Notes under the pieces: model-generated
Told to the model about the DNA's origin: nothing
Seen by the model: the letters and a program-made list of their open reading frames with translations, nothing else
Database searches by the model: none
From: Orbicella franksi
Taxonomy: Eukaryota
Direction: 5' to 3'
Length of the DNA stretch: 64,000 nt
NCBI GenBank assembly: GCA_964199315.1
Contig: OZ116705.1
Coordinates: 24,056,001-24,120,000 of the forward strand
Made by a program: the position numbers and the translations under genes
Shown: piece by piece, positions 45,159 through 46,013 of the stretch
How the letters are laid out: every line of letters begins with the position of its first letter
Position numbering within the stretch: position 1 is the stretch's first letter

Positions 45159-46013
45159 CTACAGATTCTGCTTAATTTCCTCGAGCTTCGCCAGATTGGC
45201 GAGTTTCCTTACGAAATCAACGGCCGACATGACAACCAAGGCAATCTTTGCTATCAGCGCCGCTCCCTCTGTAGCAAGAGCTGCAATGATAATGGCCGTC
45301 ACCTTAGCTGCTGTCTCAAGCCAGTCGTACCATTTCATCTCTCTGCACAAGCTCTTGATGATGGTCCACACGATTCCAGCTGCGTAACTTTCCTTCAGAA
45401 GGATGAAGATGGCTTTAGCTCTTTTCAATGCATTGCCCCCAGCCGCGTGCCAAGAAGAAATGAACTTTGCAATCGCCCTCTGCAACGCCGAAGAATTCTC
45501 AATTGCCTTCGCGGTGTCTTCAATTGTGGCTTTCATCGTACTCTGGCTCACAGATGGCTCTAGGCCTACTGCGCTCATGACGAGAAGTATGGCCTCAACT
45601 AGAATACTGGCTTCCTGTAGGATGCTTGCCCAATCGATGTCTGCAACTGTTGTGAGCTCTTTCCCAGGTAGGAATTCCTTGCCTTCCCTTGTCATCTGCA
45701 CCAAATATTTGCCACCTCTCTTCTGGGTTATTTCCATGCGAAATGTTGGGATGCTGAGTGCCTCTTCTATCAGCTTGATCCGGTCTTCAGGCAAGTACTT
45801 GGCAAGCCTTTCGCGGATGTCTTGGTCAGGTCGAGAAGCGAACTCATGGGCGAGTTTTACTTCTTCGGTGGCTGCCGCTCTGGCTGCTTCAGTAACAGCG
45901 TCTCTCACTTTGGGATCTGCATTCATCTTTGAAAACTCCTCGGGAGCATTTTTTTGGATTTGCTCCAAGGCTCCTTTTACTGCTTGTGAAACAGTTTCGC
46001 TTTCAGCCGCCAT
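45159..46013 (-). CDS. Intronless 284-aa all-alpha orphan protein with C-terminal hydrophobic hairpin (alpha-pore-forming-toxin-like, unverified)
   Basis: Complete ORF, ATG in gccgccat context (minus: cgacATGGCG), ending in TAG. Hydrophobic segments ASILVEAILLVMSAVGL and AAKVTAIIIAALATEGAALIAKIALVVMSAV. No signal peptide. Candidate 5'-UTR intron at 46026-46173 (gtaatt...ttacag). Confidence 0.85.
   Translation of the reverse strand: MAAESETVSQAVKGALEQIQKNAPEEFSKMNADPKVRDAVTEAARAAATEEVKLAHEFASRPDQDIRERLAKYLPEDRIKLIEEALSIPTFRMEITQKRGGKYLVQMTREGKEFLPGKELTTVADIDWASILQEASILVEAILLVMSAVGLEPSVSQSTMKATIEDTAKAIENSSALQRAIAKFISSWHAAGGNALKRAKAIFILLKESYAAGIVWTIIKSLCREMKWYDWLETAAKVTAIIIAALATEGAALIAKIALVVMSAVDFVRKLANLAKLEEIKQNL

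Follow-up and report, generated by a model that had tools for sequence, protein, structure and literature searches.

An undescribed and strongly conserved animal protein family with relatives among the cargo of phages and plasmids, seen from an intronless gene of the coral Orbicella franksi

What is the origin and the role of an intronless gene of the coral Orbicella franksi whose product had first been read, from the sequence alone, as an orphan helical protein resembling pore-forming toxins and perhaps acquired from bacteria? The gene is located at positions 45159-46013 of the minus strand of a stretch of 64,000 nucleotides (contig OZ116705.1 of the assembly GCA_964199315.1, positions 24,056,001 to 24,120,000), hereafter the window, which has 38.8% G+C and zero N and whose positions are used throughout. 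The analyses reported here show that the encoded protein of 284 amino acids (aa) belongs to an undescribed family which, judging from the sequences retrieved, is strongly conserved and patchily retained across Metazoa. Furthermore, the core of the protein (aa 64-270) is homologous to the phrog_3518 proteins of bacteria and phages, and no relative whose function is known could be detected for the family, either by sequence or by fold.

The open reading frame (ORF), one of the 11 ORFs of at least 130 aa found in the window, runs for 284 uninterrupted codons from the ATG at 46013 to the TAG stop at 45159-45161. Its translation agrees with the preliminary description of an intact coding sequence (CDS) without internal intron, whose product has a single Cys and no signal peptide: C223 is the sole Cys, and the N-terminus is polar and devoid of any signal-peptide-like stretch. 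The protein also includes five Trp and 16.5% Ala. On the opposite strand, the CDS is overlapped by two ORFs, 139 and 229 aa long (45144-46092, plus strand), which nothing else supports and which most likely result from the richness in Ala of the coding strand.

This gene is a real and selectively maintained coral gene located in an ordinary coral chromosomal context, and it looks expressed. The sequences closest to its product are of coral type and share 99% and 81-90% identity with it, and coral-metagenome contigs from Tara carry an 86%-identical orthologue. A 348-kb ENA contig from a related coral (L004) is syntenic with the window over roughly 32.6-54.6 kb, i.e., about 22 kb. This syntenic region includes the gene found upstream, an uninterrupted ORF of 599 aa encoding an F-box and leucine-rich repeats (LRR; 49156-50955, minus strand), which is likewise intronless. 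The ratio of nonsynonymous to synonymous substitutions (dN/dS) among coral orthologues is 0.18-0.24, a comparison that leaves out the short Logan contig L021, put out of register by a one-codon length difference; this ratio indicates that the coral orthologues are under purifying selection.

The gene is not an orphan, as had been thought. A word-indexed search retrieved more than 150 close homologues (150 matches listed), nearly all of about 284 aa, and an exhaustive profile search led to 478 clusters (50% identity), of which 90 have E<=1e-30. Nor is the family specific to cnidarians. Besides the stony corals Oculina, Desmophyllum, Montipora and Stylophora and the scyphozoan Aurelia, it includes members from the sponge Oscarella pearsei, the clam Mercenaria and various echinoderms, namely the brittle star Amphiura, the sea star Patiria and the sea cucumbers Holothuria and Apostichopus, the latter with several copies. 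The teleost Gymnothorax javanicus, a moray eel, carries at least five copies on one scaffold of 85.8 Mb. Orthologues with gene identifiers include AWC38_SpisGene18781 of Stylophora, LOC119732824 of Patiria, BSL78_21855, BSL78_21856 and BSL78_12549 of Apostichopus, LOC123537017 of Mercenaria, and Seg3189.1 and Seg1501.1 of Aurelia. Many Mb-scale contigs carry members called as uninterrupted ORFs of about 284 aa, and the eel copy that was examined (L018, CM056203.1, 7.81-7.83 Mb) is a single uninterrupted exon of 855 nt. Some variants were also found, such as a tandem-fused protein of 586 aa in Amphiura and a Ser-rich N-terminal extension in Montipora. Among the named matches, no vertebrate other than the moray eel occurs, and its paralogues carry neighbouring locus tags.

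The mean identity is 57% between eel and echinoderm proteins, 54% between eel and coral, 52% between coral and echinoderm and 46% between coral and Aurelia; it falls to about 41% between the sponge and the others, about 32% between the clam and the others and about 22% between bacteria and animals. In a bootstrapped neighbour-joining tree, the corals and the eel copies are each monophyletic (97% and 100%, respectively), the eel stands beside the echinoderms, Aurelia is separate and the sponge is near the base of the animal sequences, with only a divergent paralogue from Amphiura branching earlier. Gene tree and identity matrix thus appear to follow broadly the species tree, with lineage-specific expansions, and the simplest history would be that of one ancient animal gene followed by many losses. 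A broadly conserved eukaryotic family of non-toxins had been named beforehand as the finding that would speak against a toxin; conservation is indeed what was found, and the term "non-toxin" cannot be shown for members without known function.

The relationship with prokaryotic proteins relies on several profile comparisons. When each bacterial or archaeal species was represented by a single genome, scanning led to the identification of three relatives, from a Marinoscillum metagenome-assembled genome, Xanthomonas hortorum and Bacillus mexicanus, each being a standalone ORF of 210-233 aa. The alignment by hhalign of the animal profile with the Xanthomonas protein gave 98.6% (E 1.4e-15), and its alignment with 14 bacterial members gave 99.5% (E 1.7e-22), residues 64-270 of the window protein (45204..45824, minus strand) corresponding to residues 19-210 of the bacterial ones. 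In the opposite direction, the bacterial profile retrieves the eel, coral-type and sea-star proteins at database-wide E-values of 1e-10 to 4e-15 (best 3.6e-15). The hidden Markov model of phrog_3518 matches bacterial members up to E 1e-73 and the window protein at E 4.8e-10 over aa 137-264. Furthermore, the sole real match of the predicted structure in BFVD is gp120 of the Synechococcus phage ACG-2014f (UniProt A0A0E3ICJ9; probability 1.0, TMt 0.58). A scan of IMG/VR loci with the animal-family alignment gave no match.

The prokaryotic members are sporadic single-gene cargo of mobile elements: temperate P2-like phages, a cyanomyophage, a plasmid and islands flanked by transposon or integrase genes. 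The family phrog_3518 occurs in 15 records of P2-like Burkholderia phages and 45 records of Synechococcus phage ACG-2014f, and one member is carried by the Burkholderia cepacia plasmid pBC25416, where it adjoins a Tn3 transposase. In the phage phiE12-2, the homologue is gp26, located between regulatory genes and the tail gene D. The attP site of this phage lies between gp24 and gp25, and neither gp25 nor gp26 was given a function (PMC2920897); these two are therefore at the end of the prophage. In Burkholderia ubonensis, the homologue is found in islands that also carry an integrase, a Tn3 transposase, KfrA, H-NS and AbiEi/Eii. In all three B. ubonensis contexts (L008-L010), a convergent DUF4337 gene follows the homologue, an arrangement not kept in other taxa. 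One copy, 76% identical, is found beside cyanobacteria-type genes. No conserved neighbour is common to the nine bacterial, phage and plasmid loci, which therefore do not point to any immunity-like or operon partner. No paper on the family came up when the literature was searched with locus tags, accession-like identifiers and the PHROG number.

The existence of bacterial and phage homologues bears on the proposal that the gene could be of bacterial origin. Since the gene tree is species-like, any transfer between bacteria or phages and animals would be ancient, and the proposal does not hold for a recent acquisition by corals. The link between animals and prokaryotes could result from an ancient transfer, in either direction, which would have occurred at or before the base of the animals.

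What such a protein could do has to be considered in the light of its predicted architecture. The AlphaFold (AF2) model of the window protein is confident, with a mean predicted local distance difference test (pLDDT) of 93.5 and a predicted template modelling score (pTM) of 0.91, whereas the model of a bacterial homologue reaches 83 and 0.79. Helices cover aa 2-58, 66-83 and 123-283, and a three-stranded polar beta-sheet is predicted at aa 92-120 (45654..45740; strands 92-97, 103-109 and 112-120, mean hydropathy <=0), so that the protein is not all-helical as first described. This sheet aligns with a low-confidence loop of the bacterial model (pLDDT <50 at 54-70). The N-terminal amphipathic helices (aa 2-22, 24-32 and 34-58; 45840..46010), with hydrophobic moments of 1.2-1.3, are specific to animals and outside the bacterial alignment. 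More generally, the helices 2-22, 34-58, 157-172 and 175-191 have hydrophobic moments of 1.1-1.3.

Two regions are apolar throughout: their moments are 0.5-0.9, and over 19 residues their Kyte-Doolittle values peak at 1.9 and 2.0, respectively. The first apolar helix (aa 123-148; 45570..45647) carries near-invariant Q133, S136 and E140, the latter aligned with an invariant Asp of the bacterial proteins. The second is an Ala/Ile hairpin (aa 228-261) whose helices, 228-247 and 251-261 (mean hydropathy 1.0 and 2.6), are joined by a T-E-G turn at 248-250. Together with the motif KWYDW (227-231), it forms the most conserved block of the family (aa 227-261; 45231..45335), the core A-T-D/E-G-x-A-L-I-A of which is common with bacteria and phages. 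The Ala of the hairpin have an i/i+3/i+4 spacing, which would suit very tight antiparallel packing. The terminal helix (aa 265-283; 45165..45221) has a mean hydropathy of -0.34 and a moment of 0.56; it carries conserved D266, K270 and N273 and is no hydrophobic tail anchor. All these features are on the minus strand, and the amphipathic helices, the mid apolar helix and the hairpin with its TEG turn after KWYDW were all located as they had been described. The apolar helices are better conserved than any other part of the protein, and in the animal sequences the commonest residue takes up on average 0.84 of a column, a value that also holds for the block 227-261.

Pfam, NCBIfam and PADLOC were scanned with the window protein, with 32 members from animals and 14 from bacteria, and with 10 longer members that resemble fusions. 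No match above cut-off was found for any of them, and no informative domain fusion was found either. Sub-threshold matches to 7TMR-HDED, the N domain of Arg-tRNA synthetase, holin_phiLC3 (E 0.0084) and LeoBC (E 0.0054) were rejected as noise. Among the PADLOC defence models, neither the window protein nor four of the five bacterial members found a match, and the fifth gave the weak LeoBC match of E 0.0054. Sequence searches of the PDB with the single protein and three profiles gave nothing significant; matches to the SurA N-domain (E 0.06) and to a designed repeat (E 0.01) were set aside as insignificant or compositional. In the same way, Foldseek found no match in the PDB for the coral and bacterial models (best E 0.19 and 0.41, TM <=0.34).

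These results bear on the systems with which the protein had been compared. It had been said not to resemble actinoporins, aerolysin or MACPF, and no Pfam domain of these three types, nor any sequence or fold signal of them, was found. The likeness to colicins, ClyA and Bcl-2 which had been put forward did not find any signal by sequence or fold. It should be emphasized that Foldseek is weak on all-helical proteins; membership of these families is therefore ruled out, but not a similar mode of action.

The reading that we favour, although only tentatively, is that of a soluble helical bundle which shields its apolar hairpin, associates conditionally with a membrane and has a conserved intracellular role. 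Being devoid of a signal peptide, the protein would be made in, and stay in, the cytosol. Some ten amphipathic helices, along with the small sheet, would wrap three uniformly apolar helices (123-148 and the two of the hairpin 228-261), and exposure of the hairpin would lead to conditional association with, or insertion into, an intracellular membrane. An unrelated family would in this way have arrived at the "inside-out" logic known from the pore domains of colicins and from Bcl-2 proteins, in the service of a conserved cellular role rather than as a secreted cytolysin. The apolar helices, with their conserved acidic residues (E140, D/E249 and D266), appear too charged to be constitutively transmembrane and far more apolar than ordinary soluble helices. 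The insertion energies, which are simple sums, are all at least +2.8 kcal/mol, best 19-mer included; together with the conserved charges, these positive sums make constitutive transmembrane segments unlikely. Conditional membrane association is judged most likely because the helices are too charged for the membrane and too apolar for an ordinary soluble protein. A bolder proposal, which we hold to be doubtful, is that the family represents a new class of intracellular, conditionally membrane-inserting proteins, with a fold unlike solved structures, common to phage or plasmid cargo and early-branching or marine animals, independent of colicins and Bcl-2 and possibly involved in cell death or defence.

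Several points weigh against conditional membrane association. No annotated relative bears on function, and the Foldseek comparison of both models with the PDB revealed no fold match to any membrane-inserting protein. For instance, colicin N (1a87) ranks 15 for the coral model (E 0.55, probability 0.12, TMq 0.13), and Bcl-xL was matched by the bacterial model at E 0.8-1.7 (probability 0.06-0.09, TM 0.15-0.21). The proposed burial of the hairpin is derived from sequence periodicity. The residue-by-residue conservation of this hairpin could equally reflect a fixed structural core or a binding surface, and the very high conservation across phyla would also fit a purely soluble housekeeping role. 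Finally, taxon sampling rests on the minority of database entries that carry names, and absences are undemonstrated.

Some of these points lead to a rather less probable but serious possibility, that of a soluble protein without any membrane role, for instance a scaffold or adaptor, or a bundle that binds lipids or ligands, in which the apolar helices would be the permanent core. The model is indeed compact and confident, the helices 214-222 and 251-261 are too short to span a bilayer, and the charged conserved residues of the apolar helices and the positive insertion-energy sums agree with this possibility, as does a conservation that is both high and residue-specific. The highest TM-scores of the bacterial model, although non-significant (0.25-0.34, E>1), are with the lipid-pocket fold of TIPE/TNFAIP8. 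However, about 55 residues of uniformly apolar helix are unusual for a soluble protein of 284 aa, and the comparison with the PDB by Foldseek did not find any soluble fold relative either.

It is unlikely that the protein instead resides permanently in the membrane, be it as an integral or as a monotopic protein (anchored by its hairpin, for instance, or forming a small subunit of a channel or transporter), with its acidic residues in the membrane plane. Three segments (128-150, 201-219 and 236-268) exceed the classical Kyte-Doolittle value of 1.6, and the conserved E140, D/E249 and D266, in or beside the apolar helices, recall ion-coupling residues. Holin-like (E 0.0084) and MotA/PomA-like (E 0.41) matches were also obtained, all of them weak and below significance, and no membrane-protein fold was matched significantly. 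Moreover, neither terminus carries a signal or an anchor, the terminal helix being polar on average, and the simple sums of insertion energies, at +2.8 kcal/mol or more, argue against stable insertion. As for the model itself, it shows a globular bundle whose helices are short and whose sheet is polar, rather than transmembrane helices running in parallel.

The proposal from which this work started, a cnidarian cytolysin or antimicrobial effector perhaps of bacterial origin, now appears very improbable when taken to mean an alpha-pore-forming protein that is secreted or part of a venom and was recently acquired. It accounts for the apolar hairpin within an amphipathic bundle, for the intronless CDS and for the existence of bacterial and phage homologues, and the expansion of copy number in eel, sea cucumber and brittle star is sometimes seen for defence genes. 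However, inspection of the N-termini of 18 animal members, drawn from six taxonomic groups, showed no signal-like apolar stretch, so that none of the members examined appears to have a signal peptide. The distribution of the family beyond cnidarians and its species-like gene tree are also at odds with a recent cnidarian effector. Cross-phylum identities of 40-57% and a dN/dS of about 0.2 are unlike those of fast-evolving venom or antimicrobial effectors. Furthermore, there is no sequence or fold match to alpha-pore-forming toxins (alpha-PFTs), and the bacterial loci are devoid of a conserved immunity partner. The toxin proposed in the preliminary description is unsupported, and five points weaken it: the lack of a secretion signal, the very high conservation across phyla, the purifying selection on coral orthologues, the distribution of the family over several phyla and the absence of an immunity partner in the bacterial loci.

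As for an artefact (bacterial contamination of the assembly, chance ORF or dead retrocopy), which an intronless CDS with bacterial relatives could have suggested, it is excluded by the eukaryotic F-box/LRR and SET-domain genes that flank the gene, the synteny with a related coral contig, an identity of about 22% to bacterial proteins versus 99% and 81-90% to coral-type sequences, purifying selection on coral orthologues and conserved upstream splice signals.

These splice signals belong to a candidate intron of the 5' untranslated region (5'UTR), located at 46026..46173 on the minus strand, with GT at 46173-46172, AG at 46027-46026 and a polypyrimidine tract. It would be preceded by a putative non-coding first exon (46174..46255, minus strand), a conserved block upstream of the donor that is colinear with orthologous loci to about 46255. 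Three orthologous genomic loci (L004, L002 and L019) have kept the donor, the acceptor, the polypyrimidine tract and the upstream block. In the Logan contig L021, which carries an 87%-identical orthologue, colinearity ends exactly at the acceptor: the contig keeps the first bases past it, the otherwise conserved tract is missing, and its 5' end resembles the putative first exon. The contigs L001 (99% identical), L002 and L003 are colinear with the genome through the candidate intron; they are therefore genomic or unspliced and uninformative on splicing. The divergence of L021 at the acceptor gives modest support to the intron, short of proof. The signals of the 5'UTR intron proposed earlier at these same positions are present, and the intron is still a candidate.

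Farther upstream, between the 284-aa gene and the F-box/LRR gene, the region 46670-48200 contains at least six dispersed copies of an element of about 50-90 nt with a common core. Short matches to this element are also found in the orthologous loci L002, L004 and L019, and it may represent a family of small repeats or an array with a regulatory role.

Other parts of the window carry further features. A 272-aa ORF (5402-6220, minus strand) encodes a Laminin_G_3 / pentraxin-like domain (E 2.7e-24). Two ORF pieces at 59102-61158 (minus strand) match the SET domain, weakly (E 0.0042, under the Pfam cut-off), and the Rubisco-LSMT substrate-binding domain (E 1.3e-8), and are probably exons of a SETD3/SETD6-like methyltransferase gene. 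The stretch from about 38600 to 41800 has no counterpart in the otherwise syntenic contig L004 and may be a lineage-specific insertion. It includes two overlapping ORFs (39175-39855, minus strand; 39778-40758, plus strand) that have no Pfam match, and a PDB sequence search with the plus-strand ORF was also empty.

If the mechanism favoured here is true, the design in which a soluble bundle hides an apolar hairpin, known from colicins, the T domain of diphtheria toxin and Bcl-2 proteins, would either have been invented independently in this family or have in it a very old relative. From sponge to fish, the family would keep 40-57% identity, and temperate phages and plasmids would carry it as cargo as well. 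It would then offer an entry point to how membrane-active modules pass between bacterial mobile elements and animals, and to why some ancient animal genes persist only in scattered marine lineages. If the apolar helices merely form a stable core, the family would be one more conserved domain of unknown function. Function aside, a family that is large (478 clusters), confidently modelled and absent from both Pfam and the PDB merits a family definition and a structure.

Among the known systems, the pore domains of colicins (A, E1, Ia and N) share several traits with the window protein. They are soluble helical bundles whose long apolar hairpin is penultimate and followed by one helix, just as the apolar hairpin of the window protein lies near the C-terminus and is followed by the helix 265-283, polar on average; neither has a signal peptide of its own. 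However, no Pfam or PDB sequence match to colicins was found at E<=1-10 for the window protein and the 32 animal and 14 bacterial members, and colicin N is absent from the top 50 of the bacterial model. Furthermore, the present family has no receptor or translocation domain, its nine prokaryotic loci have no adjacent immunity gene, and its hairpin, unlike that of colicins, is conserved residue by residue and contains charged residues.

The proteins of the Bcl-2 family, such as Bcl-xL and Bax, would be comparable in being cytosolic bundles of similar size, with a hairpin shielded by amphipathic helices, that act inside the cell. But the window protein and the 46 relatives scanned gave no Bcl-2 match in Pfam, and no Bcl-2 protein is present among the 50 matches listed for the coral model. 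Moreover, the window protein has no hydrophobic C-terminal tail anchor, and its hairpin is near the C-terminus and not central. Alpha-PFTs of the ClyA/Hbl/Nhe type are, like the window protein, mainly helical with a small beta element. However, no such structure is among the 50 matches listed for either model, the beta element of the window protein is polar and does not form a hydrophobic tongue, and the model is compact instead of being an elongated rod.

The closest comparison remains that with the phrog_3518 proteins. These prokaryotic proteins, of about 200-235 aa, are devoid of the first 60 or so residues of the animal ones and of the ordered beta-sheet of the animal model. They carry two invariant Cys that are missing in animals, the invariant Cys of the latter being C223. 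On these grounds of length (about 284 aa), extra N-terminal region of about 60 aa and different Cys, the animal proteins are, at the level of their sequences, a distinct subfamily. Animal and prokaryotic proteins nevertheless have in common the W-x-D-W motif, the A-T-D-G-x-A-L-I-A core of the hairpin, an acidic residue of the first apolar helix (the window protein has E140 there) and the Asp that follows the hairpin (D266).

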